32,000 nt of DNA from Amoeboradix gromovi X-113 (GCA_018985225.1 JADGIF010000005.1:16304-48303); one strand, 5' to 3'; shown: positions 855 to 32,000, counted from the first letter of the stretch. Made by a program: numbers and translations. Notes: generated by a model from the letters alone, not told the origin.

Positions 855-1007
855 AAGAATACGGTTACACCAATTTAATTTTTTCATTCATAAATATATT
901 CTTCTACATCATCAGACCAACTAGGTAAAAAATACACAAAAGGCAAATTATATTCCGGTGACTTGGCAATAATTTGTTAACAATTTCTCTTCTTTATTTG
1001 CCTCTCT

Positions 1008-1821
1008 ATGAGTTTAGGACTGTTTTAGCCGGAAAATATATATCAATCCGAGACTGCACTATAGCAGGCTTGTTATCTTCAACGAGTGGCTCATTTCCAA
1101 CCTTCAAAACTTAAACCGGTTTAAACACCTAATGAAAGAGCAAGTCGAGGAGCATCCCATCCTGAAGGACCGTAATTGCATGGATACCACATCCTTGGAG
1201 CATTTGCAAGAGCAATTAAAGGAGTTCTTCAAGCTCACAAGATAAATTACTATGTGAGTCAAAGCAATGATTTCAGTTGCCTGTCGTTTTGTACATTATG
1301 GCAGAATACTCCGCAGAAAGCAACATATGCTGGAAACTTATCTGAAGATATGATCCAAAGTGATAAAAGCATTGCGCTAAATGTGAACACCTGCCGGAGA
1401 AGGAATAGATCATAGATCAATCGATGCTCCAAACTGCTAGCCTCTCAAGAATCTTCAAGGATGACCCGTCTCTGTAGTACAAGTCAAGAAGCCAAGAACC
1501 TCAAGTAAGCCATACATAGAAGTAGGCTCAAGGTACTTTATGAGTATTTAAGCGGTAAATCACAAGAAAATGGCGCAATGGACACAATAAATTTGATATG
1601 TGGATTCTTTTCTGTTGATACCAATCGCAGCCATAACACACCATTCTCCGTTAGACGTTGAAAACAGATCGTTAACTAAGACATGCTAGACTTCTGAACT
1701 TGATTGAATTAGGTATATGCAGCTGAATATGGCTCTAGATCAGGTCTTGCTCATCTTCTTGGATATTAGTAAGCGCACATGATTGCTTCCTAAGCCGAGA
1801 GTTATCAGTGACTTATTCAAG
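1008..1821 (+). pseudogene. possible highly decayed TnpB/Fanzor2 relic
   Basis: Broken + frames give RKIYINP, EEHPILKD..., DKSIALNVNT (RuvC-I-like) and KNLK*AIHRSRLKV in the expected order. No second copy in the window; motifs are weak. Confidence 0.25.
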
Positions 1822-2030
1822 TATACTATGATTTATGCCACTATACAGTTTCTGTATTGTTCATCACCAATTTTTTCAGTATGAATAATGCATTCTCGCT
1901 GAGATAAGATCAAAGATCTGAACTCGTAAATAAAATAAAGCGTACTGCCTGGATTCTTTACACAAGCACCTACTAAGAAAAACAGTTTATACAATAAAAG
2001 ATTTGCTCAAAGTGATTTACTGTTTCTTAT

Positions 2031-4151
2031 TTAAAATGTAGAGTATATCGCATTAGAGGCTTTGCTGCTATCAGTGCCCTTGCCCAATTTTGATAAAAGC
2101 GTTCTTCGGAATGGCGCAAAGTGCAAGACTGTAAATAATAATAAAGTGCTTGCAAAGAATCTCACAATCACAGAAAAGGTGATATCCCAGAGCTTGGGAG
2201 TATAATATTTTGCAACTTTGTCTACCGATTGAACTGTAAAAACACTAGTTGCTTTCGTATGCTCATATGACAATATTGTTGAGTTGATAGTAGCCGACCT
2301 TCTTCTCAAACTTTTCTTTGACTCCAACAAAACCTCTAAAGTACTGTCATAAAGAGTAGTGTCAAGTTCAAGGCTTTTTCCAATGTTTGTCACATCTTCA
2401 GTAGCTTCACTTTGGGGGACTGAATTGGCGTACGTTTTAGATAATGATTTCTTAATCTCTGCTAAAGTAGAGCTGGTCGCATTCTCAGCAGAAGCAATAT
2501 AAAAATCGAGAGTAGTGACAAACACTACAGTAGATTCAGTGGATTCCGTAGATTCCGTAGATTCCGTTGATTCAGTAGATTCCGTAGATTCCGTAGATTC
2601 AGTAGAAACGATAGAAGAAATATAAGCAACAGTACTGGTAGAAACTGGCGCACTAAAGAGATTATCTTTGACACACTTTGCAAAATCATTGCTGTTCGTA
2701 GACTTCAAAAGTGGATTTTCTGAGATGTTGCAAGCTACTAAATTACTGGTGCTGTTGAAAAAGATGTCGGTGATAGAGTTGTTCTGAACATACAAATACT
2801 CAGGATTCAACAACCATAGCGTGCCGCTAAAGTTGTTATCATATAGAATCAACGACTTAATGGCAGAAGGAATGCTTGGAAGGTCTCCAGTGAAAGTATT
2901 GACAGATAAATCCAAGTAAGTCATGTTGACAGGTATTGCGAAGAGTAGACCAGAGAGCTGATTGTATCCGACATCAAAAGTTTCCATAGAGATAGGCAAA
3001 GTCGATGGGAGAGTGCCTGTCAAGGAATTATGACTGATGTTGAGAAAAGATAAGCCTGTTGGCAGAGTGGCTGGAAAATAACCAGTGATGCCGTTCATTT
3101 CCAACTTCAATGTCGTGAGTAAGTCAGGTATACTGGCACTCTGTATTACACCATTTAAACCATAGCCTTTCCAGTTGATCTGCACTACACGACCTGAAGA
3201 GCCCTGGTCACATGTGACTCCGGAAGCAACACAGCAGTTGCCATAAATCACCCCCATGTTGCTAGGATTCACCTCTTGCATCCGCAATGCTCTGGCTAGG
3301 TCTATCACTTTTGGACAATCGGTGGAGATAGAGTAAGCACCATTCTTATTACATTTTGCAAGGGTTGGTGAGCTTATCTGTGCTAGTATAGGGTTGCTGG
3401 ACAAATCACAGTCAAACCAAGGGTTGGTGTCGGTACCAATGACAACGCTGGTTACGTAGGTACCTGGCATATGTATTAGCTTTGGTGCAGCCAAATATAA
3501 TGTGCCATTGAACCTGTTGGTTGGATAAGCATAGTTCAAATAAACTTCTGAAATGCCGCTCGGAAAAGCTGGCAATGGTCCCGTCAAGTAGTTTCTATGC
3601 ACTTCAAAGAACTGTAATCCAGCTGGAAGGGTTTTTGGCAACCAGCCAGTTAAAAGGTTATTCCTTATATAGTACGCGTAGATATTAGGAGGTAGAGTCT
3701 GGTGCATCTGACCAGTCAATGAATTTATGATGCAGCTGAATGTAACAGTGCTGGTAGGAAGAGTAGGGTACATATTACCACTTAAAGAGTTAAAACTGAG
3801 GTTTATAGTTTGCAGCGAGTCAGGCAACATCGGGATTCCCCCAGTTATTGAGTTTGAGGACAAATCTAACACTGTTAGCGCGTTTGGGACTGCTGTCCCC
3901 AAGATAGTTCCATCTAATCCCCAACCTGACCAGGTTATCTGAGCTACGCGCCCACTTACACATGTCACACCGTTTGCAGTGCAGCAATCAGAGTTTATGA
4001 GTGCCATGACAGCAGGCTGCTTTGTATTTACGTGCAGTCCCGTGGCAAGGTTGATGACATTTGGACAGTCAACCGATACGGCGAAGGTTGTTTTTACGAA
4101 CCAAATCATCAATAACATCCAAAGAGAAGTCATCGCGCTCGTGTTTGACAT
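2031..4151 (-). CDS. secreted/single-pass membrane leucine-rich-repeat protein with two Cys-capped LRR modules and a Ser/Thr-rich stalk
   Basis: Hydrophobic N-terminal signal. Two DCPxVIxLA...CC...GVTC...RVxxIxW caps, each followed by LxxLxLxxNxLxG repeats. (STE)n stalk and a C-terminal hydrophobic segment. Confidence 0.85.
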   Translation of the reverse strand: MSNTSAMTSLWMLLMIWFVKTTFAVSVDCPNVINLATGLHVNTKQPAVMALINSDCCTANGVTCVSGRVAQITWSGWGLDGTILGTAVPNALTVLDLSSNSITGGIPMLPDSLQTINLSFNSLSGNMYPTLPTSTVTFSCIINSLTGQMHQTLPPNIYAYYIRNNLLTGWLPKTLPAGLQFFEVHRNYLTGPLPAFPSGISEVYLNYAYPTNRFNGTLYLAAPKLIHMPGTYVTSVVIGTDTNPWFDCDLSSNPILAQISSPTLAKCNKNGAYSISTDCPKVIDLARALRMQEVNPSNMGVIYGNCCVASGVTCDQGSSGRVVQINWKGYGLNGVIQSASIPDLLTTLKLEMNGITGYFPATLPTGLSFLNISHNSLTGTLPSTLPISMETFDVGYNQLSGLLFAIPVNMTYLDLSVNTFTGDLPSIPSAIKSLILYDNNFSGTLWLLNPEYLYVQNNSITDIFFNSTSNLVACNISENPLLKSTNSNDFAKCVKDNLFSAPVSTSTVAYISSIVSTESTESTESTESTESTESTESTESTVVFVTTLDFYIASAENATSSTLAEIKKSLSKTYANSVPQSEATEDVTNIGKSLELDTTLYDSTLEVLLESKKSLRRRSATINSTILSYEHTKATSVFTVQSVDKVAKYYTPKLWDITFSVIVRFFASTLLLFTVLHFAPFRRTLLSKLGKGTDSSKASNAIYSTF
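2530..2606. repeat. 9-bp coding tandem repeat (GTAGATTCM x ~8.5) encoding (STE)n in the LRR stalk
   Basis: Units gtagattca/gtggattcc/gtagattcc are directly visible. Confidence 0.9.
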
Positions 4152-4503
4152 TCTTTGTTTTATATTTAGGCCGTTGGCAGATTCGAATTATGTTCTGACA
4201 CTAAAAAGAACCGCTGCCCAAATAATTGGAAATGGAAGATAGAGGAGCACGATTGCATCATGAAATCGCAATATCATTTTTTCGTTCATGCTCTTCCTAC
4301 GGTTGATGCTGTAATAGCAATCTTGTGACACAAATATACTGAGATCCAGGAACGAGCTTGAAGCATAAATATGAGCCTAATATTAAAACCTGCTATTAAG
4401 CTTTGAATTCAATATATTTAACATTTGTATGGATTCACGCTCGTTGGAAATTTACCATAAGATTTACTTAATTTGAGTTTCATTCCTCATGGATCTAGCA
4501 CGC

Positions 4504-5260
4504 CTCGTGAAAAGTCCTGATGAGCTGTAGATGCACATATCTCTAGTAAAATAGCTAGGAACCTGCTGTACTAATGTCAAGTAAATTTATTGTACAGTCC
4601 AATAGAATTCTGTTGCTGAAACTTCCATTCAGTTAATGTCCAGATTAGACTTCATAGAGCTCTTGCTTGATATTGTGATCTTAAAAGTCGGTATAGGAAA
4701 TAGCTCCGTCAGTTAAAAGACCTGGGTTAGCTATTCATTCTTCACCTAATGTTGACTTCCACGGTGAAATGAATAGACAATCTTAGGTCTTGGCGTACTG
4801 CAAAAAGGATGCGAAATGTCATAAATATGTCAATGAACTAAGCTTTTATCAAAAAATTTGATTTTAGGTCAAGACGAGGAAATTTATTCTAATTCTCCTT
4901 CAAATGCCATTAGTTGAACAAAAACATAAACGGCGTAAAATTCACTTCCCGTGGTTTAATTTGATCAGCGCGATGATAGGCACCACATCTGTTAATTATA
5001 TGCTGGTGTTTGTGTACAAATTACACTGGATGGTTGATAATGTGCATTAATGCAGTGGTTAGAAAGACTACTCAATTCTTAGCATGGCTTCTCTAGATTT
5101 CTTTCCATGCCCTCCAGGTATTCATTGCATAATAGATGGTGTAGCGGGTTTCATATTGTGCATGTGTATGTCTCCAAATTGGTTTTATTAGTAAACCGTT
5201 CATAGTATTCTAGAAATGTCTTTCCTCTTTATTAGCACTCCATATATTTGTGCACCATCT
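4504..5260 (-). mobile_element. degraded family-A IS607/Fanzor2 relic (right-end motif plus RuvC-II/zinc-finger fragment)
   Basis: 4504-4521 on the - strand reads ATCAGGACTTTTCACGAG, a 17/18 match to the family-A right end. ~5150-5240 on the - strand translates EC**RGKTFLEYYERFTNKTNLETYTCTI*, matching KCKQRGNTSVECNEAFT (23.3 kb) and KTNLETYTCTKC (14.95 kb). The intervening ~600 bp could not be aligned. Confidence 0.55.
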
Positions 5261-5376
5261 GAATATCTTGTTTTATGAAGTTTGAAACGTTTAGAATGCG
5301 ATTATTGGAGCGATGTATCTCGTTTAATCACGAATGCGTCATGCGATCCAAAACACAATAAAAATAATTAGCAAGT

Positions 5377-7171
5377 TTATTTTAACCCTAAATCTTGTGC
5401 TACCAGCTTTGAGCAAATTGAATGATACCTGTTTCTAGCCAGCTCAAATGTCGCCTTAGCTTCGGACGGGTAATTCTTGTTATATACGCGATACAACGGC
5501 CTTACGTACTTCATTCTTCCTTGATTTAACAAGAATGAATTCGCTAATGGTAACACTTGATCATATTTATGCTTCAAACACAATTTAATAAATCTGTACT
5601 GCAGTTCCAAATTAGCTGGTGGTTTCTCTACATAATTGAATTGAGCGCTAAACAATTTCACAAATTCTATATTCAATGGCCTGTCAATCAACACATCCAT
5701 CAAATAGATTTGTTGATCTATAGACAATCCTTCAAATCCTTCCAATGTTGATGGCAATTGAACCCACTTGTTAACTAGCTCTGTGACCTGGTTAAACAAT
5801 GTTAATCCAAATGAAGCTTTTACTGGCGGTAAGCCTTGATCATTAAACCAACTGTTGAAATCCACGGCATTTATCAACTCTAATTTGTGGCTTGCCTTTT
5901 CGCTAGTCCAAATGATCAAAAAATCCTTCCAGTCCTGTGCGCTTAACGATTTATATTTGAAATTGTTGATATATTCCTTGGAGTACTTCTCGAATAGGTC
6001 GTATCCTAATATGGTTTCAATGTGGTACAACAATTGAAAACCTTTTTCATATGGAACTGAGCTAAATGCGTCATCGGGATCAATTCCACTTAATTTGGGA
6101 CAAAGTTTTGTATATTCAAGCTCATTTGATTCAGTGTATCGGTTAATACTCTCTTTCATATCATGGTCACCCTGCAATGCCGCAAATTGACGCACATCCT
6201 CACCATGAAGTTTTCGAAGAATCGCCCGCTCGAGCCACACTGTCCATCCTTCATTTAGAAAGAAAGATTCCCAAGAATGATTTGTAACTAGGTTTCCAGT
6301 CCAACTATGCGCAATTTCATGAGCAACAACATCAGTGAGAGATCTATCACCTGCAATTAGTGAAGGAGTAACAAATGTAAGATTAGGATTTTCCATACCT
6401 AAATTAGAAATCAATACCTCCGAACGGGAATGAAAACGGTAAAACCAAGATATCGTACAAACCCCAGGCGTATGGAGTCAATATATCCTCTGCGGCTTTA
6501 ATGAACTTTTCAGTTTCTGCAAATTCATATGCACATTTATCGATAAGTTCCGGTTCAGAATAAACATTACTGCGGGGACCAATTGGTCTAGAAACTAAGT
6601 TTCCAACTGCCAAGGCTAATAAGTAACTGGGAATTGGAATAGATTGCTCAAAACTTGTAATTTGTTTGTCTTCCAGCTTTTCAGTTCGAATCTTTAAGGC
6701 TGACATTAAAGGAACAAGGAATTCATTACTGCAGTTCTTTTCAGTTACTTCAACTGTGGCGTAGTATTTGAATTTCAACTTTGGGGCATCAAAGCAAGGC
6801 AGTAGGGATCTAGCATGAATTGCTTGGCATTGTGTAAACAAATATTTTGTTTTAGACAATGTTTGATTCTTTGACAAAAACTTGGCAGCAGTACATTTGT
6901 CTGTCGTAGAATAAGTTATTTCGACTTTGTCTGTAGGTTCCTCAAAGTCAATCTGAAGTGGGGTGCCTAGAGCATGATGAGTTTCTAGCATACTGAATTT
7001 GCCGTTAGTGCTTTCAATCTTCAGAAAACTGGTATCGAGCGTAACACTCTTGGTAGGTTCGGATAGCAACCATGTACATTTTCCATGAATAGTGTTAGTT
7101 TCAAAATCAACCTTGATTGCCCATGTTAAATGAGATGGAATCGCATTAGAAAAAGAGCAAGGATCTACCAT
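5377..7171 (-). CDS. LTA4H: leukotriene A4 hydrolase / M1 leucine aminopeptidase, join(7171..6418,6398..5377), 591 aa
   Basis: MVDPCSFSN start, FTQCQAIHARS, PIPSYLLALAVG, HEIAHSW...LNEG zinc motif, SSVPYEKG and QGRMKYVRPLY. Removing the intron restores the FPFGGMENP motif. Confidence 0.95.
6399..6417 (-). other. 19-nt spliceosomal intron GTATTGATTTCTAATTTAG
   Basis: GT...AG ends with a CTAAT branch-like motif 2 nt before the AG. Removal joins the two ORFs in frame and recreates GGMEN. Confidence 0.9.
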
Positions 7172-7452
7172 GTGGGAAAAACTCTTCAAACTTTTAAAAC
7201 AAATGTCTCAAAATGCTAAAGTAATTGCTTTGGTACTCATTATTTGAGTTAAAAATTCTTGATATTCTTCTTGTTTGCCAGTCAGAACTTTTGTCATTGC
7301 TCAGTAGATTTTTTACGACTTTGAGATTGTTAAAACAAGATTCACACCTCGATCGACGAGAACATCATAGTGCAGATCTTAGAACCTTAAGAGATCGCCG
7401 AATGCTATTGTGCTTGCCACCATTATCATTTCAACTTTAGCATTATTGAAAT

Positions 7453-7859
7453 GGGACACCAAATTTAAAAACTAGACTAACTCGTTTTTAAAGAAGGTGC
7501 ACCATCGGAGGAAATGCTATCATTAATAAAAGATCTTCTATTATACCAGTTTTCTTTCATTGATTGTATTCCCTCTTCAAAATAATACTAGATATGAGGT
7601 CTTTGAGCATCTAAGCAAAAGGTGCATTTTCTTACTCTTATATATTTCTTTGAAGTGTAATAGTGATGTTTTATTTGAAATAAAGATTGGATGAAAGAGT
7701 AAGAGAACAGCTGTACAGAATATTTATTTTCCTTTTATACTCGTCAACTCCGCAACTAGCTGAATGTCCACTCGCCTCTTGAATCCATAAAATAATAAAG
7801 CTGAAATAATGATTCAAACTTTATCAGAAAGTTAGTCCAGTTTTTATATTTGATGTCCC
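7453..7859 (-). mobile_element. family-B MITE copy 1 (407 bp, 30-bp TIRs, AAAT TSD) carrying a Fanzor1-like C-terminal fragment
   Basis: TIRs GGGACACCAAATTTAAAAACTAGACTAACT (7453-7482) and 7830-7859 match at 27/30. AAAT at 7449-7452 and 7860-7863. Homologous to 18140-18566 (inverted) and 31779-32000. Confidence 0.9.
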
Positions 7860-7925
7860 AAATGTTCTTTAAGCAGGGTGTACAACTGATTCTGTATTTA
7901 GAGCACACTTAAGGAAACTGCAAGG

Positions 7926-8159
7926 CCTACGTTGAATGCAAATGTCTGAAATAAATCAGGTTTCACGTTTCTGGAGTGTAGATAACCTGTGTAGATGACA
8001 CTTAAGCATAGTTGCATTCTCATATTTCATATTTGTCGTCACTATCTTCACATAACAACTTCCCTGCGCATCATATTAGTTTTTCTTGCATTCGCAAGTG
8101 TTTCCTATGATGTTGTTTGACGTAGCACTCTGGTGATAATTGTTAGATATGGCCTTGAG
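7926..8159 (-). mobile_element. family-C IS607/Fanzor2 mini-element copy 1
   Basis: Collinear blocks shared with 24077-24491: GCCTACGTTRAATG, CAC..TTCT..AGTGTAGA.AAC.TG.G.AGAT, CATCATATT, TCCTATGATRTTG. The left boundary is approximate. Confidence 0.6.
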
Positions 8160-8261
8160 TAATTTTTCTGTGTTTTGCCGCCTCTAGTTAATTCATAGAG
8201 GATGTAGATAGTATCGGAAAAGAAAACTCACTTTAATGGGAGGATTGACTAGAAATAGTAT

Positions 8262-8948: not shown

Positions 8949-9085
8949 GCAATCTGAGACTCAGATCACCACGTTGAATCAGTACTTTTTATGGATGCGC
9001 ATTGCGGACTTCTCAAACGTTTTGTTCTTTAATATCCTTTTTGCGTACTATACTTCTTGTAGGCTTTAACAACTTCATCCGTTTT

Positions 9086-9213: not shown

Positions 9214-9430
9214 GTTACAACAAGTGTTATTGAATAAACAAATTTATCGAGAACACGTGTCTTTTTTATATGTATACTCTTCTTTTCTAGATACTCCAAT
9301 GGTATAAAAAGAGGATCCTCGCTGTTCATCAATGGCAAGTAGCTCTAAACCTCGCAATCCTGAATACGTCAGATCTGAAGAAAAAACTAATAGATATAGT
9401 AAACACTCATCGATATTGAGAAATTGGTGT
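9214..9430 (+). mobile_element. family-A left end plus IS607 TnpA HTH stub, head-to-tail with the preceding right end
   Basis: 9225-9290 resembles the left ends at ~23000 and ~15310. 9354-9428 translates RNPEYVRSEEKTNRYSKHSSILRNW, versus RNPEYVKSKEISNSYSIHLSTLRNW at 23117. Confidence 0.65.
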
Positions 9431-9540
9431 GGGTAGAGATCATGAGCCACAGCGGTTTATCAGAAATCAGCGATTTCTATGGTGGGCATCTAAACTTTTG
9501 CACGTCGAATCAATTCTTAACTTTCTTAGATTGTTATTTA

Positions 9541-9729: not shown

Positions 9730-9739
9730 ATTAAACGAA

Positions 9740-10015
9740 CTTTGAGAAATGGCAGATTCACTTCAAAGTGACCAAAGATAGGCTAGTGTAAGACTGCGAA
9801 AACTTAAACAAGCAATTTCAATGTAATTCGAAAGGCCTAACCTTAAGCAACTCTCCTTTTTTACACCGTTTTCTGCCACGTGAGTGTAGAAGATTTGTTT
9901 TTTATTGCTTGGTGATTTAGTATAATTAGCATATTGTGGTATGGAGAATTTCGAATCACCTGTCATGAATGCGAAGAGCCAAACATCATGTTTTTACTTG
10001 ATTAGAAATTTACAA
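9740..10015 (-). pseudogene. possible decayed IS607 TnpA serine recombinase
   Basis: - strand gives KFLIK*KHDV (compare family-C KFIR...KQYDV), KKQIFYTHV (YARVS-like), R.GLSNYIEIA...LTLAY and, frameshifted, FGHFEV, in TnpA order. Confidence 0.35.
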
Positions 10016-10552
10016 TGTGAAAGAACTATTGGAACGATAAAAGCTATGTAATAGCAATAAATGGTTTATTCAATTAGAATCAATGACTGTTCGTCAAGTT
10101 TGCTATCAAATGCTGTACAACAGTTGATATATCAAGACTGTCTCTTTGCATCATGCGGCAATTACGTTGACAACTGTAAATGCTTAGACTCTTGATGCAT
10201 ATTTACTTTTTGTGTCTTTACGATAATTGAACAAAACGTTGCTTAACGAATAGTAAGATGAGACTTATATCCGCATCAGACTCGGAGATCCATAACAATG
10301 TGATACAATAGAAAAGAGTCCACCTCTTTGGATTGGTGTCAATCGATGCATGTTATGTGTCTCTAAAGGCCACTGTTTTAATCGCAATTTTCTTTTTAGG
10401 ACCTTCCATAGGCACTGGAACAACTGTTTGAAGTTGCTCTATTTCATAAACACATCAATATTGATACCCAACTAGCAATTCTGATTTATTGAAAATAGAA
10501 CAACGTTCAGGAGACACAAGGCCAGCATGTCATTCTCTATCTCGAATGCTGC

Positions 10553-14547: not shown

Positions 14548-14762
14548 GCTCTTCAATAATCAATAAACTTTCCAAAACAGAAGTTTCAAAAATTATGGCA
14601 GCACTCGATTTCAATTGCACAAACCAACTATAGTGATTAAACGAGGCATGCCTATTCAATATGCTCTTTATAAACTTAACTAGCTTTATGAAACAATATA
14701 CTAGAAACCGGTCTAAAAATGAACTGGAAGTGCAAATAACAGGGAAAGACATTGGTAGCCTA

Positions 14763-14886
14763 CTCGTTAAAAGTCCTGATTTCCGAGAAAATCGAGAATT
14801 TCCACAGAGCAGCTAATGGTAGATCTCCGTTACAGTGACTGCTCACGCTTTCACTACCCTGAGGCGGGATTGAATAAGGATACATA
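14763..14886 (-). ncRNA. family-A putative omegaRNA scaffold
   Basis: Copy of the conserved structured end: TAGTGA-aa-GC GTGA GC-ag-TCACTG, ACGGAG/CTCTGT, terminal GACTTTTAACGAG. Confidence 0.65.
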
Positions 14887-15328
14887 TACTTGATGTATAT
14901 GTTCCTTGCTGCCATATGATCTCTGTCTATCTTCAAATGACACTTTGTACAAGTGTAGGTTTCTAAATTAGTTTTCTTTAGAGTAGCACACCTCGTACAT
15001 GCCATTGAATTTGTTCCTTGGTGCCATGTGGTCCATTTCGACTTCCAAATGACACTATATACATGAATAGCTCTCCAAATTGGTTTTCTTAAGGGTGCCA
15101 CATATTGTACATGGTATCGAATTTCCATGCTTGGACCAGCTTATCAGTCTGAGACGAATGTATGCTGTACCTGCTAGTTATTTCTTTAGAATCGATTTAC
15201 CATTTGCGAAAAGAATATCGAGTGTTTAGGCTATTAGAAAAATCTGGAAAAGTCTTGAAATTATACAAAAATGCATACAGATTCGCGATAAATGATATAT
15301 TCAAGAAAACAATCGAGGTCTTTACACC
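14763..15328 (-). mobile_element. family-A non-autonomous IS607/Fanzor2 element (TnpA HTH stub, duplicated Fanzor2 zinc finger/RuvC-III, structured right end)
   Basis: Homologous to 22985-23566 at both ends. SKEITSRYSIHSS..L..WSKHG, then CTICGTLKKTNLESYSCI*CHLEVEMDHMAPRN and CTRCATLKKTNLETYTCTKCHLKIDRDHMAARNI. Confidence 0.85.
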
Positions 15329-18570: not shown

Positions 18571-18873
18571 GGTCTCAAGGTAAAAATAACAAAATTTATT
18601 TAATATTAATTATTAAGTTAGTAATGTGCTTTAGCTGTCATGGGAATGATGACAGGTATAAGAGAATTCGATCTACTGAATTTCTTTGCTTACGCCAGAG
18701 CACTCACTGTAATGTATTCATCGATGGAGATTGGAACGCATATCGTGACAACCTTCAAGTTCTAGAATGCGCATCTAGCAAAAGTGAAAGCCCGGTAGGC
18801 AGAGAAGGGACCACAGCGAAAGAATCTCATTAAATCTCTGGGTCATGAAATATGGGATTCTTCTGTATAGCGG
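18571..18873 (+). mobile_element. family-D TnpB/Fanzor remnant with structured 3' end
   Basis: ORF 18624-18833 CFSCHG...R..EFLC......C..FIDGDWNAYR matches a zinc ribbon plus RuvC-III (DRDxNAA-like). Hairpin AAGAATCTCAT (18820-18830)/ATGGGATTCTT (18852-18862). The 5' end GGTCTCAAGGTAAA resembles the family-C left end. The right boundary is inferred. Confidence 0.65.
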
Positions 18874-18901: not shown

Positions 18902-21900
18902 TTACCTCCCGCAGGCCTTTATAAACTCTTTTATTTCCGTGGCATCCTTGGTTCCTCTAACTATTTCCACCCCGCTACTGCAATCCACTCCAACACCAAT
19001 CCTCAGACCTTCCTGAACGTTTTTTGTGTTTATACCGCCTGCTAACATAAAATCTTTGCATTCTATTAAATCCCAATTTAGTTGCTCTCCAGACCCACCG
19101 TTTTCGCCATCCATTAAGTATATTAGTGGTTTTCTATTGCATTTTTCGTATTCCTTTATTTCTATTGAATTTCTAATAGCTTTGATAACCGGCACGCTCA
19201 TCATATCAACTAATTCATTGCTCTCTTGCCCATGTAGTTGCACCATATCTAGTCTGCAGTATCGTACTATTTCTTCAATTTCTGCAAAGGATTGATTCAT
19301 AAACACTCCAACATTTAATGGTCGGTTACTTGTCCCACATACACGTTTTACAACCTCAATTCTATCTTTTATCGAATCAAACCTTCTTCCCTGCTGCAAT
19401 AAGCCAATGTTAATCTTGCCACTGTTAACGATCTTGCTACAATCTTCTTTATCTATAAATCTTGGAGACTGCTCGACAAACACAAACCCAACCATCTCGA
19501 CAGCGCAGAGTGTATATATATCAAGAGTTTTAACTCCGCAAATTTTAACTAACTTATCAACATGCTTTGAAGTCGGGTTTCCAAATATTGAGCTGATAAA
19601 TGTAAAGGGATCGTTCTTCATCAACGCTTCTCCAATCAACACACCATTACAGCTATTATCTTTATAATAAATGGCATCTTGAGGACTGCTGATACCACTT
19701 AATGCTATTATGCTTTGACAATTGGTAAAATATCTCATAATTTCAATGGTATGATGTTTGCTCACTTTAAAATTGTGCAGGTTTCTGTTGTTTATTCCTA
19801 TTAAAGTACACTGTAGACCATTAACAATCTTAGCCTCTTCTACAGAGTACACTTCAACCAATGGAGTCATTCCAAGCAATAAAGTATAGTCTATCAACTC
19901 TTTCAATTCCTGAGTATTTAAGATGGCAGCTATCAGTAAAATAATATCGGCCCCATATACACGAGACTGTAATACTTGGTATTTATTAATGATGAAGTCC
20001 TTTCTGAGTACTAGCATATCAGATTTGTCTAATAATACTCTAATTTGGGCCATGTTAGCTAACTGTCCTTTAAAATATTTCGGTTCTGTCAACACACTTA
20101 TAACAGAAGCATTAGAATATTCATACTGCTCTGCTATATGAACTATAGAAGTAGACTTATTAATCACTCCTTTGGAAGGGCTAGCACGTTTAAACTCTGC
20201 AAAAACATGAAAGCTTTTATTTTTTAATTTTCTAGCGGGTAGCGCATGTGGTAGAATATCCAATAGGTCGTTGAAGGTATTTCCGGGTGTGCTCATCAAA
20301 TTTGACAGATCTGATCGTGTTACTTCTACAATTTTATCCAAAATAGATTTTTCGTTCAAATTGGCTGCCGAATTTGCAGTAGTTGTACCAGTTGACATGG
20401 CTATGAAATTTTTAATCATCTGCTTTCCGTACTCACTTTTTATTGACTCAGGGTGAAACTGAACTGCATGTATGCAATACTTATTATGAGCTACACTCAT
20501 CAATAACCCATCTTCAACAGTGGTTGAAGTGCTTACAAGGTCATTCCCTTGGATTTTGCCTATTAAGGAATGATATCTCATGACTCTTAGTGGAGATGGA
20601 ATATCCAGAAATATACCACTCCCTGTATGCTCAATCATAGATGTCTTGCCATGCATTAAGTATGGCGCGTAATCTACTAATCCGCCGAATGTCTCGCATA
20701 TTAGTTGATGTCCTAGACATATGCCCAATATAGGGACCAACCCCTTAAACTCCTCAACAACAAGCGGACAAATTCCCGAATCTTTGGGAAAGCCTGGACC
20801 CGGACTTATAACAATATGCGATGGGCACATTTCATGTATTTGCTGTAAAGTAATTTGGTCATTGCGTACTACAAACACAGCTTTACTAATGTAGTGATAA
20901 ATGTTAAAAGTAAATGAATCGTAGTTGTCAATCAATAGCACGGGATTGCTTGTATCAGGTTTTAAATGCTTGTAGGCTGCTATGCTCTTGTTTCCAGGAA
21001 CATTCTGGATCTTTACCATTGTTAAAGAATGGGCAATTGTATTGTTTAATGGGATCTTGAATAGAGATTTAGCACAGCAGTCTTCAATTGCTTGAAAACA
21101 GGCACCCATCTTGTTAACCGTTTCTAGGTATTCCATGACTGGGTCACTATCAGCTACAATTCCTGCACCGGCTTGTATTAAAGCAACTCTCTTGTTGCCA
21201 ACATTAGTGAATACTATAGTGCGAATCGCGATAGCAGAGTCCATACCACCTCTACCATTTATATATCCGACTAAACCACCGTAAACACTTCTTCTATTGG
21301 GTTCAAAATGATTGATTAATTGCATTGCTTTGTGTTTCGGCGCACCACTTAAAGTACCAGCAGGGAATAAACCACGAACTACATCAAACGTATCTGACAC
21401 ATAAGCATGTTTAAACGTGAATTTTATTTTGATAAGCGATTCTAGGTCAATTAGCTCTTGGGGCTTGTCTGCCAATGGGTGGACAACAAATGAAATGCCC
21501 TGTACTTCGCTAACTATATGCATAACATGCGAAAAATACTGAATCTCCATGAATTTAGAAACTTTAACGAGATCCAAAATAACGGTGGGGTGTGGTAACA
21601 CAATTCTTCCGATATCGTTACGAGCCAAATCTACCAACATCAAATGCTCTGCACATTCCTTTTTGTCACTTAATAAATCCTGTGATAAAACATCATCCTC
21701 TATTGGATTCTTCCCACGTTTACGAGTGCCAGCTATAGGATGGGAATAAATTAGAATTTTTGTAATGACATTCTCCCTTTGTACCTCAGAAGCAATGGGA
21801 TCAATTCTACAAAGCAGCTCCGGAGACGCACCTACTATACTTGTAGAATCAAACTGCATGTAATACATATACGGGCTAGGATTCATTTGCCTCAGAGCCA

Positions 21901-22753
21901 TGTAAACTTGAAATTCGTTCAGGTTGTCTACTTCCAAAATAACTTGACGTGCAAAAACGCATTGAAATATGTCTCCCTCATGAATATGGTGTTTGATCTT
22001 TAACACATTACTCTGGTATTCGCTTTCAGACATATTGGAGTGTCGTTGCTTAATTGATCCAACAGAATACGGGATAGAAATGGAAGAACGATGGTAAATG
22101 TTCTCGCTATTCATGATAGACAGGCTTATGTTTTGCAGATCTTGTTGATGTTCGTTGTAAATTACTGATAAATTAGATAGATCATTTAATATCACAATTT
22201 TATGAACATGAACCAGATGATGTACATGGTCGTAAACACAATAGTAAGTAGGAATTATCCATTGCGACCTATGGATGTTGTCATGAGCTAAATCAAATAT
22301 CGAGGTAGATTGTTTTTGCTTGTATGGAATGTTATGATACTGCTCGATAAGATCGTAGCTGAGATATCCTACATGCGTAATAAAATGCAGCGGAGAGTTG
22401 CTGATGATATCGTAAGTATCTTCAAGAGTAGAGGAGTTTTCGATTACTGTGTGACCAGTCCCCATCAAAGAGTACTGGTTCATATGTGTTAATTGGGCAC
22501 TTTCCAACAGAAACGAGTAGTTGCTCTGAATGCTCAAATAGATGGATGTAGGTGTTTGCAAGGAAGCATTAAATTGTTCGTGCAAAATTAGAAGAGTGGG
22601 ATTTTGTCGTTTCATTTGGTCGTTCCCCTCGTAAAAATCATGGTATCCAGTAAAGTCAAGAACTTGTAAAGAGAAACGGACAAAGTCAGTCAACACGCTA
22701 TAGCGGCTACTCATCCTTCCAATACGGTAAGTCGGGATTGAATTGGGGCGCAC
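18902..22753 (-). CDS. multifunctional tryptophan biosynthesis protein: anthranilate synthase component I + glutamine amidotransferase (component II) + IGP synthase + PRA isomerase (TrpE-TrpG-TrpC-TrpF)
   Basis: TrpE: SFLLES, GDIFQ, NPSPY, PIAGTRKRG, EHLMLVDLARND, FPAGTLSGAPK. TrpG: IDNYDSF, SPGPG, GICLGHQ, RYHSL, QFHPES. TrpC: AEFKRASPSKG, SVLTEP, LRKDF, GINNRNL. TrpF: VKICG, VQLHG, LAGG, GVDCSSGVE. The true start is probably ATG 22714 or 22615 (the ORF track starts at a GTG). Confidence 0.93.
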   Translation of the reverse strand: MRPNSIPTYRIGRMSSRYSVLTDFVRFSLQVLDFTGYHDFYEGNDQMKRQNPTLLILHEQFNASLQTPTSIYLSIQSNYSFLLESAQLTHMNQYSLMGTGHTVIENSSTLEDTYDIISNSPLHFITHVGYLSYDLIEQYHNIPYKQKQSTSIFDLAHDNIHRSQWIIPTYYCVYDHVHHLVHVHKIVILNDLSNLSVIYNEHQQDLQNISLSIMNSENIYHRSSISIPYSVGSIKQRHSNMSESEYQSNVLKIKHHIHEGDIFQCVFARQVILEVDNLNEFQVYMALRQMNPSPYMYYMQFDSTSIVGASPELLCRIDPIASEVQRENVITKILIYSHPIAGTRKRGKNPIEDDVLSQDLLSDKKECAEHLMLVDLARNDIGRIVLPHPTVILDLVKVSKFMEIQYFSHVMHIVSEVQGISFVVHPLADKPQELIDLESLIKIKFTFKHAYVSDTFDVVRGLFPAGTLSGAPKHKAMQLINHFEPNRRSVYGGLVGYINGRGGMDSAIAIRTIVFTNVGNKRVALIQAGAGIVADSDPVMEYLETVNKMGACFQAIEDCCAKSLFKIPLNNTIAHSLTMVKIQNVPGNKSIAAYKHLKPDTSNPVLLIDNYDSFTFNIYHYISKAVFVVRNDQITLQQIHEMCPSHIVISPGPGFPKDSGICPLVVEEFKGLVPILGICLGHQLICETFGGLVDYAPYLMHGKTSMIEHTGSGIFLDIPSPLRVMRYHSLIGKIQGNDLVSTSTTVEDGLLMSVAHNKYCIHAVQFHPESIKSEYGKQMIKNFIAMSTGTTTANSAANLNEKSILDKIVEVTRSDLSNLMSTPGNTFNDLLDILPHALPARKLKNKSFHVFAEFKRASPSKGVINKSTSIVHIAEQYEYSNASVISVLTEPKYFKGQLANMAQIRVLLDKSDMLVLRKDFIINKYQVLQSRVYGADIILLIAAILNTQELKELIDYTLLLGMTPLVEVYSVEEAKIVNGLQCTLIGINNRNLHNFKVSKHHTIEIMRYFTNCQSIIALSGISSPQDAIYYKDNSCNGVLIGEALMKNDPFTFISSIFGNPTSKHVDKLVKICGVKTLDIYTLCAVEMVGFVFVEQSPRFIDKEDCSKIVNSGKINIGLLQQGRRFDSIKDRIEVVKRVCGTSNRPLNVGVFMNQSFAEIEEIVRYCRLDMVQLHGQESNELVDMMSVPVIKAIRNSIEIKEYEKCNRKPLIYLMDGENGGSGEQLNWDLIECKDFMLAGGINTKNVQEGLRIGVGVDCSSGVEIVRGTKDATEIKEFIKACGR

Positions 22754-22984
22754 ATGTTTGTCACTATCAAATAGTCGTTACAACCACCAGAAAATTCCAC
22801 ACATACTGCTCATCTGGCTAATAAATTTCCATTGAGACTCGCCATTATCTCCCTTTTTTGCACAAGACCTCAACTAAAATATCCTTTGGAGCGATAAAAT
22901 TAATTCAAGCCGATAAAAATTTCATTCGATTAAAAAATAAACTTTTGTAAACAAATGAGACATTACTGTGAACACTAAATTAGC

Positions 22985-23566
22985 TATTTAAAAAGCTCCA
23001 TTGTTTTCTTGAATAATTATTTGTCGCGAATTTGTATGCATTTTTATATAATTTCATGACTTTTCCAGATTTTTATAATACCTTAATTACTCGATATTCT
23101 TCATAGAGTTAGTGGACGTAATCCCGAATATGTCAAATCTAAAGAAATAAGTAATAGCTACAGCATACATTTATCAACGCTGAGGAACTGGCCCAAGCAT
23201 GGAACAATTAGTTATCTTTCGACGCCAGGAAGCGATTTCTCTACAATTTGTTCAAAGAACTCTTGAAGTTCAAGTGTAAGCAAAGAGGAAACACGTCGGT
23301 TGAATGTAATGAAGCATTTACTGGTCAGACATGTACGAGGTCTGGTACTCTAAAAAACCAACTTAGAAACCTGAACCTGTACAAAGTGTCATTTGAAGAT
23401 AGAGACAATATGGCAGCAAGGAACATTTACATCAAGTATATTTATCCTTATTCAATCCCGCCTAAGGGTACTGCAAGCGTGAGCAATCATTGTAACGGAG
23501 CATCTAGCATTGCTAGTTTCTCTGTGGAAATTCTCGATTTTCTTGGAAATCAGGACTTTTAACGAG
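22985..23566 (+). mobile_element. family-A non-autonomous IS607/Fanzor2 element
   Basis: 23117-23230 reads EYVKSKEISNSYSIHLSTLRNWPKHGTISYLSTPG(fs)KRFLYN, an IS607 TnpA MerR-like HTH. It is joined by deletion to FKELLKFKCKQRGNTSVECNEAFTGQTC...EDRDNMAARNI (Fanzor2 RuvC-II, zinc finger, RuvC-III). The left boundary is approximate. Confidence 0.88.
23438..23566 (+). ncRNA. family-A putative omegaRNA scaffold
   Basis: Conserved structured end: CTAGC-att-GCTAG inside ACGGAG/CTCTGT, then GATTTT/GAAATC. Ends TTTTAACGAG. Confidence 0.65.
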
Positions 23567-23769
23567 AAGTAGTTCTCATTAGATGGAGACTAATAAATTT
23601 ATTTAACACTACTAGTTACCTCAGGAAGATTTTACTTAACTTCCTAGTCAGTTCATTTATGGTGAAGAAAGCAGTTACTACCTTAAAACAACCCCAAAGG
23701 TTATAGTGTCAATGATCTACATTATTCCAGCCTAGTCATTAGCAAATATATCGGTCGAAGCAGTTTTTA

Positions 23770-24049: not shown

Positions 24050-24076
24050 TAAATTTGGGACATGAATGATTGATCG

Positions 24077-24491
24077 CCTACGTTAAATGTGAAGAATTCG
24101 AAAATCATGAAGATTTAAAACCCACACTTCTCAAGTGTAGACAACTTGGGGAGATACCGTTAGAGCATGTTCTTGCCTGCATAATTTTGAAGTACCTGGA
24201 TTGATATCTCTATGGTCTTGGTGACCGCATTGCTGACAATTGACGCAACGCTTGCAGCTACCACAAGTGTTGGACACATCATATTGTTTTTGAATGGTCG
24301 CAACTCTAATGAACTTTGAGTTCTTTTCATTTCGCATATTCTGATGCGAAAAATTGCTCCATGTCGTAGATCTGCAAAGTGTTGAATGGTGACAAAACAC
24401 CAGTACCAATAAAAAGAAGTCCTATGATATTGAGAATTGTTTATTTTTTGTCTTTTTCACTTTCACGCCAACGGCTTTACCTTTTGAGACC
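24077..24491 (-). mobile_element. family-C IS607/Fanzor2 mini-element copy 2
   Basis: MRNEKNSKFIRVATIQKQYDVSN (TnpA HTH start) is fused in frame to TCGSC...CQQCGHQDHRDIN (Fanzor zinc finger/RuvC-III). Ends GGTCTCAAAAGGTAAAG ... TTTAACGTAGG. Second copy at 7926-8159. Confidence 0.75.
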
Positions 24492-24542
24492 TTGTTTTAA
24501 TATTTTTGTACGTTTTTGTAGAATGTGTGCCAAATTTTATCC

Positions 24543-26942: not shown

Positions 26943-27327
26943 ATATTAGCAATAAGACTCTGCAATAAATCTATATTATGCTCTTAATCACTGGATCACT
27001 TTGGCTCTTGTGACTTTACCAGCAATTAAAAATGACGACATTGAAATATTGCACTGCATATAGGGTGGCTGAATGCTAGTATTTCTTCCTTTTATTCAAA
27101 CATTTTTTGCATCGAATGGAGGCATATTCACATATCTTTGAAATTAGCTTGATTTTGTCAGATCGCTGGGAGATCAGATTGAGGAGAGCAAGTGCCAGCA
27201 ACAAATTGCAGCTTGGATTATAGATGATAAAGTATGGGAAATGCACGCTTTAGTAGCTCTTTTTGAGATATTTATATTAAGAGTCTATCTATTTATTTAA
27301 GTTAATCAAGTAAGTTAAATTTATTAT

Positions 27328-30237
27328 TTAGTCATCTCCCTTATAAACACTTGCATACGGCCCCTTTTGCAGTGCTTTTATTTTTAATAAACACTCATCA
27401 ATCTCTGCCACATCTTCCTTCAAGCTTTCTATTTTGTAAAATACTCGCAATCCGACCTTTAGATAGTTTATAGTCTTTTCCCTGTCCTGAGTTAATTTAG
27501 CTAGTTTAGGTGGATTCTTTATCTGATTTAACAATTCCAACAACAATGGCCTGTAATCCTCCAACTTGAGCTCTTCGTTATCAATTGCCATTAATACCAT
27601 GATTGCACTCTGCCTCACTTGCTCTATATCTTTTAATCCTTTGCTTAGCAGTTCTATAACATAGTCACGATTCGCCATATTCAGCTCTACTAATAATTGC
27701 AAACACGCGTACGCAAGTTTCCTATTTGTTAGCCCATCATCAATTTTAATTTTCATCAAACCCATATCTAGCACTCTTATGTATTTAGCATTAACATTAG
27801 TTTGTAACCGTAGGTACTCAAACAGCGAACCTAATTCTGTTTTTATCAATCCGTTGATAATCGCATCCATAATTATTTCCAATTTACAGTAATTGAACTC
27901 CAATAGATCGCTGGTCGTATTGAATATCTCATCTATTTGTTTGGTCACCTTTAACAAGTGGATTCGTAACATGGTGTTGTTTACCAACGAGTCATCTTGT
28001 AACAAATTTAGTCTACCAGACAACAATGAATGCGCATGAATGGCCAGACTGTTGAAGCCATCCGATTCACCCACATCCAGTTCATCTGCCAGCTTGTCAC
28101 ATAGTTTTACAAAGCTCAAATCTGCCGATTTGTGGTTCAGTAGAAACACAAGTTTGTCCTTCACATCCATTAATCCTTCATATATCTGCATGAAAACTGT
28201 GTCATTTACTCGGCTACCAGTATACTTTAGAGTGTATTTATTCAGTGGAATCGCACATATTTCAGCAATGTTTGTAATTTCATTGGACATCAAGAAAGTT
28301 GACCATGATTTTATTGGAGCAGTTGCTCTATTGGCTAGTGAGGTATAAAATAGCAGCAGTTCGCTAGGCTCTGCGCTAAAATTCGTCACGTCATTTGATT
28401 TTATCAACTCATACAAAGCATCGGTTAGATGAGGTTTAATCAGTTCTAGCTCATCCGAATTGCTAGTGGGCATATAAAATAAGTAATTCATAATAGTTTT
28501 GTCACCAATAAAAGGCAGTAACTTGTAATAATCCGAATAATTGGACATTGGATGATTTTGATTAATTAGATAAAATAATATGCCACTAATAGAATTAGAG
28601 TTAGCCGATGCGTATTTTAAGTATTCTAGTATAAACGGTAGCAAGGGCTCAATCGGTTTCATACTAAAAAGCATTGTCCATTCCTCATCAGTAAACGGAA
28701 CCCAATTATCGAAAAACAATTTGCTTCCCGAGCTTTGCAATATGTCAATTATTATTGAGTTATTGGTTTTTAACAGATTTACTAATAATGGACCAACATC
28801 AATCAAATCAGGGTACCATATTGCAACGGTTGCTAGGTTAGAATCGATAATTTTACCAAGTAGTGAGACAGTAACAGGATATAAAGACTCATGCAGCTGG
28901 TTATTCAATCTTAAATGTTCCAATATCATTACAATATTTTCTTTTGAGGAATTTAAGCAATTTGTTAGCAATGTAGATTGCCACTCAATTGGTGGACTAG
29001 AATGCTTTAGGAGCAATGAGAATAGAGTATAGTAGTGTGGGTTAGTGCTGTTGAATAAATTGAATGTTTTACTGATATGCACTGAATATGGGATTGCCTT
29101 GATCACTAACAGAAGTAGTTCATCATTATTAGGATCATTAATAAGAACAGTAAACAAAGTATCAATTAGGTTTGTGATTTGAGTAGAGGTTAACTTATTA
29201 AATTGAAGGCTGGAGAGTGATAAGTAATGATTAGCCACCACAATACGGATTTGGAGATTTTGATCGTTAAGCGAATTAATAAGAACATCGTGTGATTTGC
29301 CGGAATCAAAATCAGGGTATCTAATTAGCAATCTCGAAAGCAGTTGAATAGCGTGTAACCTAATTTGCCAACTACTATCATAATTAGAATCCATTTGATC
29401 ATCAAATCCAAAATCATCATCAAGCATGCCCTCATCCATGGAGAACTGGCACAGTGAGTTTAGCTGATTTATGAATGAATTGAGATAATCGCGATTGAAT
29501 AAAGTAAGAAACTTTGGAACAAACATATGAAACATATCAATCAAAGCACAGCCATCTAGTATATTGTCCTCGTGTAAATCTAAGGGAAGATGCAAAATGC
29601 TATGGAACTGCGCAAGTGAAGAAATATCTCGTCTGAGTATTGAAGATAAAACTGAATAAAACAAGCGAGACTGAATCCTGTCAGAAGACCTGCGCTCCAA
29701 AGTTAAATGAATAATGGATTGAAGGAGATTAGAAGGAACGCAGTTAACAAGGGCTTCTAATAGAAGATATTGTTTATCTAATGAGTCGAGAGTTGATAAG
29801 TAAGTAATAAGGGAGTCATCAAATTGGATCTTCAGATTGGATTTGTACTGTTCACAGAACTGAATAATTAGTTCTAAACACTTCCATGAAATGAACTTTG
29901 ACAACCAAGAGGGATCAAATGGTGCCCTGGACTTAATTAGTGTTTGATAACACATAACGATGATTTCTTCGTATTCATTTGAATAGAGGTCATCCAGAAC
30001 GCTGGTGACAGCACTCACATCCATCAGAGGAATGGATTTAATTGTCATCTGAACTATGTCAGCCTGATGGGATGTTAGCAACTGCAAGACTTGTCTTGTT
30101 TGCTTAGAGTCTAATAGCTGTATGGGTTCTTGATTCTTCACTGAAAGTAGCAGATCAGATAGTGCAATAAAATGCAAATCTGGATCACTGGAAGTAGCAA
30201 GGTTTTGTAAAAGTTGAGCAACCGGTGGAATTGTCAT
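27328..30237 (-). CDS. CAND1: cullin-associated NEDD8-dissociated protein 1 (TIP120), divergent
   Basis: N-terminal SSDPDLHFIALSDL, acidic loop followed by DSSWQIR, and the TIP120 C-terminal motif IRVLDMGLMKIKIDDGLTNRKLAY. Confidence 0.85.
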   Translation of the reverse strand: MTIPPVAQLLQNLATSSDPDLHFIALSDLLLSVKNQEPIQLLDSKQTRQVLQLLTSHQADIVQMTIKSIPLMDVSAVTSVLDDLYSNEYEEIIVMCYQTLIKSRAPFDPSWLSKFISWKCLELIIQFCEQYKSNLKIQFDDSLITYLSTLDSLDKQYLLLEALVNCVPSNLLQSIIHLTLERRSSDRIQSRLFYSVLSSILRRDISSLAQFHSILHLPLDLHEDNILDGCALIDMFHMFVPKFLTLFNRDYLNSFINQLNSLCQFSMDEGMLDDDFGFDDQMDSNYDSSWQIRLHAIQLLSRLLIRYPDFDSGKSHDVLINSLNDQNLQIRIVVANHYLSLSSLQFNKLTSTQITNLIDTLFTVLINDPNNDELLLLVIKAIPYSVHISKTFNLFNSTNPHYYTLFSLLLKHSSPPIEWQSTLLTNCLNSSKENIVMILEHLRLNNQLHESLYPVTVSLLGKIIDSNLATVAIWYPDLIDVGPLLVNLLKTNNSIIIDILQSSGSKLFFDNWVPFTDEEWTMLFSMKPIEPLLPFILEYLKYASANSNSISGILFYLINQNHPMSNYSDYYKLLPFIGDKTIMNYLFYMPTSNSDELELIKPHLTDALYELIKSNDVTNFSAEPSELLLFYTSLANRATAPIKSWSTFLMSNEITNIAEICAIPLNKYTLKYTGSRVNDTVFMQIYEGLMDVKDKLVFLLNHKSADLSFVKLCDKLADELDVGESDGFNSLAIHAHSLLSGRLNLLQDDSLVNNTMLRIHLLKVTKQIDEIFNTTSDLLEFNYCKLEIIMDAIINGLIKTELGSLFEYLRLQTNVNAKYIRVLDMGLMKIKIDDGLTNRKLAYACLQLLVELNMANRDYVIELLSKGLKDIEQVRQSAIMVLMAIDNEELKLEDYRPLLLELLNQIKNPPKLAKLTQDREKTINYLKVGLRVFYKIESLKEDVAEIDECLLKIKALQKGPYASVYKGDD

Positions 30238-30275
30238 GTTTCAAGGCATAAATTTTATTGTTTTAAATATAAAAC

Positions 30276-30914
30276 CTAATCAATATGAATGCTGGCGACT
30301 ATTTTCCCTCGAACACTTCCAAAATCTGATATTTTAGAGTCGCCATACACTTGAGTTAAAATTACCTTTTGCAACATTTTTGACTGAATACCCATGCCTA
30401 ACTCGAATACCATGCTACCTAGAACAAGTTCGCATTTTCCTGATTTGTAAACTCTTACTTTACCAATTAAGCCGTTGCCACTAACTTTGGGCAATGGTGG
30501 CATGCACAACATATGGATTTGATTATAGAATTCTTGAGCTTCAGACGGCGGCATTTCGTTTAGGCAAGCCTTTTTTAAAAGATCTTTCAATGGGATGTCT
30601 GATACTAAAAGCTGTTTGTCGAATTTGTACTCGTGTAAATCAATTTTATCTTCTACGCGAGTATCCATCTGAAAATCTTGCTGCGGTTCGTCAACAATCA
30701 TCTGGTTCTGAGTATGAACTTGTTTCTTGTACTTCCTGTCCTCTATTTTTCGCAACCTATTCTCAAACTCTTCTTTTCTATTTAATCTTTGTTGCTTTTG
30801 AATACTAGTCAACTCAGAATTGTCTGTATTTCTCGGCTTGAATTTAGGTTTGAATTTAAATCCTGTCAATGATGGCAATATGTTGTCTGTCTTATCGTTG
30901 TCTTCATTTTTCAT
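30276..30914 (-). CDS. RPC53: RNA polymerase III subunit RPC4/Rpc53
   Basis: Rpc4 signature GLIGKVRVYKSGKCELVLG...FE...G; N-terminal KFKPK motif. Confidence 0.8.
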   Translation of the reverse strand: MKNEDNDKTDNILPSLTGFKFKPKFKPRNTDNSELTSIQKQQRLNRKEEFENRLRKIEDRKYKKQVHTQNQMIVDEPQQDFQMDTRVEDKIDLHEYKFDKQLLVSDIPLKDLLKKACLNEMPPSEAQEFYNQIHMLCMPPLPKVSGNGLIGKVRVYKSGKCELVLGSMVFELGMGIQSKMLQKVILTQVYGDSKISDFGSVRGKIVASIHID

Positions 30915-31050
30915 AGTTTCGGATTGGGATCCCTCAAAATTTCAGAGTGGATTCCATAATGAACAATTCATGAAAGACAGAGTATAGCATAGTATTTGAA
31001 CAGATTTACTTAATTTAATTGATCGATTAAACAATCCAAAACTGAACGCG

Positions 31051-31470
31051 TTATTTTAATTTGAGATGTTTGGGTAAAATTTGCTTACAGTACTTCACTG
31101 CGTTTTCTATGTTATCGACTTTTGGATGGACACTTTGAGCTTTGGCAACTGCCACATGTTGCCGATGTCGGATTGTATGATAGTTGTACAATGGCGAATC
31201 AACAATTACTTGCATTCCAATGTAGTTGTAACTTCCGATTGGGGCATATATACATGCACCGGTATCAATGTAGTTATGGTCTCCAATATTGCATTGAATT
31301 GAAGTAAATTCGCAAATTACGGTAAAATCTCCAATACTTACGTTATTAGATATTCTAGCAGTCGGGTGGATAATGCAGTTTTTACCAATACTTACATTAG
31401 ATCCTATTGCGGTGTCAAATGCTACAACACTGTTGCTCATTTTGAAGTGTCTCGTTTCAAAAAGAATCAT
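31051..31470 (-). CDS. DCTN6: dynactin subunit 6 (p27)-like left-handed beta-helix protein
   Basis: Hexapeptide repeats NVSIGKNCIIHPTARI...IGDFTVICE and C-terminal ILPK..KL. The start may be ATG 31440. Confidence 0.6.
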   Translation of the reverse strand: MILFETRHFKMSNSVVAFDTAIGSNVSIGKNCIIHPTARISNNVSIGDFTVICEFTSIQCNIGDHNYIDTGACIYAPIGSYNYIGMQVIVDSPLYNYHTIRHRQHVAVAKAQSVHPKVDNIENAVKYCKQILPKHLKLK

Positions 31471-31778
31471 AATAAATAAACGAGACCCATTCTGACAAAT
31501 GTCCTCATTTCCAAGAAGGAAGAATACTTATAAAGCATACTAGATTACCCATTATCATTAATTGATGATGCCCAACACAAAAATGAAACGAAAAAACACG
31601 CTGAACGCGCCATTATAGAAGAACAAAAAAGATTACAATGAGGTATTAGAAAAAGACAATAAGTCAAAATCACCACATGCAAAACACATTAAACCACAAT
31701 CAAGAGAATGTGTACACGTATGTCATAACATTCAAGTACAATCCTTTTAATTTATCAATTGGGCTTCACTTGGCAAAT

Positions 31779-32000
31779 GGGACACCAAATATAAAAACTA
31801 GACTAACTGGTTTTTAAAGGAGGTGCACCATACGGAGGAAATGCTATTATTAATAAAAGATCTTCTATTATACCAATTTTCTTTCATTACTTTCAATCCC
31901 CTCTTCAAAATAAAACTAAAAGACCTGCATCTCGTTCAAATATATGAGGTCTTTGAGCATCTAAGCAAAAGGTGCATTTTCTTAGACGGTACTCTTTCTT
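31779..32000 (-). mobile_element. family-B MITE copy 3 (truncated by the window end)
   Basis: AAAT followed by the TIR GGGACACCAAATATAAAAACTAGACTAACT. The - strand reads KKEYRLRKCTFCLDAQRPHIFERDAG. Confidence 0.88.

Follow-up and report, generated by a model that had tools for sequence, protein, structure and literature searches.

Most known serine-recombinase elements of the IS607 type come from bacteria, from giant viruses and from certain protists. IS607EU, ACa-1/2 and the mimivirus ApmFNuc/ApmFz2 elements carry a TnpA serine recombinase overlapping Fanzor2 and lack terminal inverted repeats (TIRs), and eukaryotic IS607-Fanzor2 elements share a 3-nt, G-ending motif in the left flank and a rearranged RuvC-II Glu ahead of the zinc finger. 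Fanzor1 is found in TIR elements: the Sola2-Fanzor1 elements DFa-1/2/3 and PPa-1/4/5 duplicate a 4-bp AWWT target (PMC3627910); and Spu-1 of Spizellomyces, a transposase-less Fanzor1 TIR element with ~500-nt derivatives and 30-nt TIRs, has conserved bases upstream of its left TIR only, with 19 full-length and 134 ghost Spu loci and RNA evidence (PMC10432273). Here we analyse relics of both types in the genome of the sanchytrid Amoeboradix gromovi X-113, within a window of 32,000 nt from one 48-kb contig (C986, 16304-48303) of a 10.55-Mb assembly in 1319 contigs.

The relics form three families: A and C are non-autonomous deletion derivatives of IS607-Fanzor2 elements and share the traits of that type given above, and B is a TIR element with a Fanzor1-like protein that shares those of the Sola2-Fanzor1 and Spu elements. 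Both element types and ghost loci are already published; what is new is the scale in a fungal genome, and notable are the density and the coexistence of the two types in so small a genome. Compared to the described eukaryotic IS607-Fanzor2 elements, the fungal nuclear genome studied here probably contains non-autonomous derivatives by the hundred, ~580 bp and ~400 bp long; these fall into three or more lineages, A has two deletion junctions, and copies appear to be mosaic; compared to the DFa and PPa elements (PMC3627910), B has 30-bp rather than 12-21-bp TIRs, a 1.66-kb copy without transposase, and a divergent Fanzor1; and compared to Spu, the copies are several-fold more numerous, still carry the coding tail of a Fanzor, are accompanied by few intact masters or none, and are known from DNA alone. 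No report of Fanzors in this organism came up in a literature search that covered one key survey without its supplements.

We consider it probable that two Fanzor-carrying transposon types gave rise to short deletion derivatives that were amplified in trans, may have undergone restorative homing in the past, and are now mostly relics. We infer the mobilising enzymes, target-adjacent motifs (TAMs), omegaRNA and homing as follows: two unrelated Fanzor-carrying types would have entered the genome and given short internal-deletion derivatives, multiplied by enzymes supplied in trans; in A and C, a serine recombinase (IS607 TnpA) would insert the element at a dinucleotide core (AG or CG) without TIRs, the base ahead of the core completing a TAM-like left trimer (CAG or CCG) that differs from the right-end trimer (GAG or GCG); B, a Fanzor1 element with GGG…CCC TIRs, would be moved by DUF7869 (Sola-type) transposases with duplication of AWWT; while masters were active, the omegaRNA guide of a mini copy would have been its own right flank, and a Fanzor acting in trans could have re-cut the empty site, upon which the copy would be restored (restorative homing; concept reviewed in PMC13565253); and most copies would now be neutral, decaying relics.

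Family A copies (~560-600 bp) consist of a left end, a stub of the TnpA helix-turn-helix (HTH), a Fanzor2 tail with the RuvC-II Glu, C4 finger and RuvC-III Asp, and a right end; TIRs are absent, an AG dinucleotide core lies at both junctions, and two deletion junctions occur. The left flank reads RCAG (C, A and G in 44, 44 and 47 of 50 copies), and the right end GAG (G, A and G in 45, 46 and 44 of 58). Family C copies (~400 bp), with an HTH stub and tail matching the long copy C459, also lack TIRs and have a CG core, with CCG in the left flank of eight of nine copies and GCG at the right end of eight of ten (boundaries set by eye). As left and right trimers differ in both families, both show the rule of ISXfa1, in which the insertion site and the right end of the element itself carry different trimers; CCG has also been measured as the TAM of NlovFz2. 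Genome searches with A and B gave 929 and 1277 first-look candidates, respectively, which are not copy numbers; with five A-type right ends in the 48-kb contig, the candidates for A point to hundreds to about a thousand copies, and A and B probably each reach this number in 10.5 Mb. The genome-wide profile and family searches scored part of their candidates: for PF07282, 150 of 560 were scored, and all 150 lay above the cut-off.

Longer relatives of A and C are broken. C459 is a near-complete TnpA plus Fanzor2 element, in which TnpA matches PF00239 (E 6e-17) and MerR, and the nuclease has one in-frame stop; six further broken long copies were read beside it, among which C787 looks like another subfamily. 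A long rearranged A copy on C385 retains the RuvC-I DPG motif; A's own full TnpA was not seen. The genome has 12 resolvase loci. C542 carries an open 671-aa Fanzor2 with D/E/D motifs amid host genes; its best PDB match is 9B0L (mimivirus Fanzor2; E 1.7e-13), and its database relatives are ~30-40% identical. Being ~50% identical to A tails and having a different right end, this Fanzor2 belongs to another subfamily and is not the parent of A or C; that C542 is a fully intact element is ruled out by a stop in TnpA after the HTH. The RuvC-I D, the Glu ahead of the C4 zinc finger and the RD motif are all present in C542, C459 and C385; the mini copies retain only the tail. On either side of the C542 Fanzor2 element lie orphan open reading frames (ORFs; L071, 390-1307 and 3804-4115), and upstream there is a Sola-like TIR; the ORFs are possibly cargo of a larger element.

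Family B copies (~400-490 bp) end in 30-bp TIRs, GGG…CCC. A 4-bp AWWT target duplication matches at 69 of 92 positions, versus 53.5 in shuffled flanks (p<0.001); duplications of 2 or 3 bp were tried and fit worse. Flank conservation is one-sided: WAC stands ahead of the left duplication, with C in 22 of 23 left flanks vs. 10 of 30 right flanks (p 3e-6). The B pieces in the window have no Pfam match and match Fanzor1 elsewhere in the genome (E 1e-19). A 1.66-kb B copy on C33 has a frameshifted Fanzor1, a perfect AAAT duplication and no transposase inside; a sister subfamily on C1157 has a Fanzor1 frame that runs without a stop over 435 aa or more until the contig ends, with DPG, NESYTSK, CxxC..CxxC and ERD motifs that fit the Fanzor pattern D-X(125,275)-[TS][TS]-xx-C4 zinc finger-X(5,50)-RD; and many Fanzor1 pieces lie at contig ends. 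The B protein matches the Fanzor2 tail profile (E 1.4e-7) and PF07282 (E 4e-4), has only a handful of database relatives, and found no match among PDB sequences; its AlphaFold model (pLDDT 37) is unusable. Its assignment to Fanzor1 would follow from the TIR host and from a WGDG motif, which we take to be a Fanzor1 sign. Relatives of B in unrelated metagenomes end in the same TIR, which indicates that the lineage is not an assembly artefact; one metagenomic contig with giant-virus-like neighbours encodes a full-length 616-aa relative (L079:7004-8854). B with adjoining A segments is common to L014/L061 and to L073/L068 with differing left flanks, suggesting composite movement or ectopic recombination, and in Logan contigs a B right end is frequently continuous with an A end.

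DUF7869 transposase-like loci number 29 in the genome, the longest frame being 687 aa, and one DUF7869 relic ends in a B-like TIR. The G..C termini of the B TIRs and the 4-bp AWWT duplication are those of Sola-type elements; B was most likely moved by DUF7869 transposases, putatively of the Sola type. The open 687-aa ORF (L083:909-2969, +) has a C-terminal homeodomain (E 9e-10) and no matching TIR pair. L084 (C488:7000-12985) is nested: a DUF7869 relic and cargo ORFs interrupt its Fanzor1 pieces, and it has five TIR-like ends of at least two subfamilies.

In the window (GC ~36%, with compact, fungal-type genes), A and B copies were matched by self-comparison far above chance (E down to 1e-93), and a Pfam scan of relic peptides gave PF07282 matches above the cut-off for the relics at 14763 and 23248 and one with E 8e-4 for that at 24134. 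Thirteen relics, listed below with the unconfirmed candidate D, make up 3.8 of 10.1 kb of intergenic DNA:

4501-4790 (-): degenerate IS607-Fanzor2 mini element with TnpA-HTH stub (4716-4767) and A-like right end; 22-nt end motif and TnpA-HTH match E 5e-4; the weakest confirmed relic
5150-5333 (-): diverged A-like Fanzor2 zinc-finger fragment; tblastn against the long A copy E 4e-5; pairs with 14633-14764
7453-7859 (-): family B Fanzor1 mini element with both TIRs and a perfect 4-bp target duplication
7924-8013 (-): family C right end, putative omegaRNA region; 74-77% identical to long C copies C459 and C689
9086-9216 (+): family A solo right end, putative omegaRNA scaffold; 85% identical to other A ends; fold z -4.6
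9217-9443 (+): diverged A-type left end with TnpA MerR-like HTH stub
14600-14758 (+): diverged A-like relic, cut by the adjoining A copy
14760-15317 (-): complete family A mini element in which a 112-bp zinc-finger segment occurs twice; PF07282 31.3 bits
18140-18566 (+): family B Fanzor1 mini element with both TIRs
18600-18830 (+): D, Cys-rich Fanzor-tail-like peptide, unconfirmed; single copy, weak relatives, no profile match
22624-22760 (-): solo right end of A type, diverged; the likely start of a Trp fusion gene lies ~10 nt downstream
22996-23569 (+): family A mini element, complete from left to right end, with TnpA-HTH stub and Fanzor2 tail; PF07282 35.2 bits
24075-24471 (-): complete family C mini element, TnpA-HTH stub joined to the second half of the zinc finger (Fanzor2); left CCG, right GCG
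31779-32000 (-): family B right part, running past the window edge

A first-pass annotation of the window had proposed about 14 relics from at least four families. Ten of these stand (A at 4501, 9086, 9217, 14760 and 22996; B at 7453, 18140 and 31779; C at 7924 and 24075), D and three orphans do not, and the relics at 5150-5333 (-), 14600-14758 (+) and 22624-22760 (-) are additional to its list; the families number three, D not being shown to be one. Its description of the intergenic space as dominated by such elements was too strong at 38%, while its proposal of parallel transposon lineages is borne out by IS607-Fanzor2 (A, C) and TIR-Fanzor1 (B). It had also supposed that the middles were deleted and the ends kept: both ends are indeed retained and RuvC-I, WED and REC are lost, but the RuvC-II Glu, zinc finger and RuvC-III Asp persist in A and B. 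The autonomous parents that, it suggested, may exist elsewhere in the genome are represented by longer parents, none fully intact among those seen.

The right ends and flanks bear on whether mini copies were acted on by Fanzors. Three or four hairpins are possible in the A right end, as is a candidate pseudoknot between a CCUC loop and the terminal GAGG, a helix in which 95% of cells are paired; C542 has CUUA and UAAG similarly placed, and a pseudoknot of this kind is conserved in IS607 and Fanzor2 RNAs. The candidate pseudoknot and the TAM-like flanks would be compatible with homing in the past by enzymes supplied in trans. The A right end shows weak to modest covariation, a one-column slide giving as many doubly changed pairs, so that this control is not clearly beaten; folding of the B and C-parent ends is somewhat stronger than that of shuffles (z about -2 to -2.5), and many copies fold no better than shuffles. 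The weak covariation and the folds agree with plain amplification in the manner of miniature inverted-repeat transposable elements (MITEs), in which the ends were kept for the transposases, the flanks reflect target preference, and Fanzor never acted on mini copies: transposase binding alone accounts for retained ends, and left ends are retained and about as conserved as right ends (0.92-0.94 vs. 0.93-0.97). We nevertheless regard this as unlikely, since the one-sided flank conservation of B and the left/right trimer difference of A and C repeat the TAM logic of ISXfa1. Very unlikely, in our view, is a living system in which hundreds of mini loci express omegaRNAs for remaining Fanzors and are kept by ongoing homing; present-day expression of the relics as ghost guides served in trans would be possible but is unsupported. 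The open Fanzor2 of C542, the open Fanzor1 frame of C1157, the well-paired helix of the candidate pseudoknot, and the Fanzor1 pieces at contig ends, behind which young copies may have been collapsed, speak for such a system, and SpuFz1 works with ghost omegaRNAs (PMC10432273); against it, the open Fanzor2 is diverged from A in tail and right end, A copies average 84% pairwise identity with neutral-looking singleton changes, and 53 putative guides compared with the genome stretches examined gave two matches elsewhere, about the number expected by chance (a rough estimate). Several observations also weigh against the history that we favour: the flank motifs could reflect transposase preference alone; the B duplication is perfect in only 8 of 23 copies; the scored matches included no intact Fanzor2 belonging to A or C; a search for an intact transposase flanked by two B-type TIRs gave none, and a single relic makes the connection; and public sequencing consists of one run, as DNA contigs, the putative omegaRNA being read from sequence.

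Variation among A copies separates masters from relics. In the A tail, variants shared by at least four copies are 25 synonymous to 19 other, and singletons 19 to 121 (p 3e-8); as shared variants are mostly synonymous and singletons are not, the masters encoded a functional protein and single copies decay neutrally. A selected fusion protein of TnpA HTH and Fanzor tail was rejected: the frame is open in 2 of 44 copies, and the start region is frequently deleted. Multi-base markers reassort across both junction classes, and pairwise distances taken from the left, the middle and the right part do not correlate with one another (rho -0.10 to 0.10, vs. 0.13-0.40 within parts), which suggests that the copies are mosaic through recombination among copies or with masters. 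For this mosaic claim alone, an artefact of whole-genome amplification or short-read assembly has to be weighed: the published assembly was built with 2x100 reads of DNA that had been amplified (PMC8371127), and repeat interiors fragment into short unitigs; but A copies differ by ~16% on average and markers ~100 nt apart reassort, and we consider an artefact unlikely. That the genome keeps about 1000 or more guide loci (IS607-Fanzor2 and Sola-Fanzor1 minis), served in trans by few nucleases whose cuts drive ectopic gene conversion and so make the copies mosaic, we consider very unlikely.

These results indicate that IS607 elements can amplify in a MITE-like manner in a fungal nucleus beside a Fanzor1 system. 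The abundance of copies lets the ends and candidate TAMs (CAG, CCG, and WAC plus AWWT) be read from the genome, and provides two testable nuclease candidates and a natural data set on whether insertion sites with a TAM are selected by Fanzors supplied in trans.

D (18571) is single-copy at the DNA level, with seven weak peptide relatives and no Pfam, PDB, Atlas or profile match, and its Cys pattern is only suggestive of a Fanzor tail. The 1.0-kb orphan has one 69-nt relative and no significant Fanzor or TnpA signal; at 9.96-10.2 kb lies a low-copy repeat in which no Fanzor motif was detected; and the position at 23.8 kb yielded nothing. Neither Pfam nor PDB gave a match to peptides of B, D or the orphans, and Fanzor1, Fanzor2 and TnpA profiles, whole and sliced, run against six-frame intergenic DNA with shuffled controls left D and the orphans unsupported, though the same profiles missed some true relics. 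Dispersed low-copy repeats of unknown type lie at 9961-10204 and 31474-31655 (65-81% identical to other loci).

Among the genes of the window, a single long ORF at 18902-22615 (-) is an apparent fusion of anthranilate synthase (TrpE), TrpG, TrpC and TrpF domains; because a stop was lost, the old Fanzor tail frame of the 22624-22760 relic continues in frame into this gene (22613-22760, -), and the relic's putative guide would be the gene's own start. A leukotriene A4 hydrolase-like gene is broken into two frames at 6404-6414, and a leucine-rich-repeat surface-type protein at 2031-4151 (-) contains a 9-bp tandem repeat coding for Ser/Thr/Glu.

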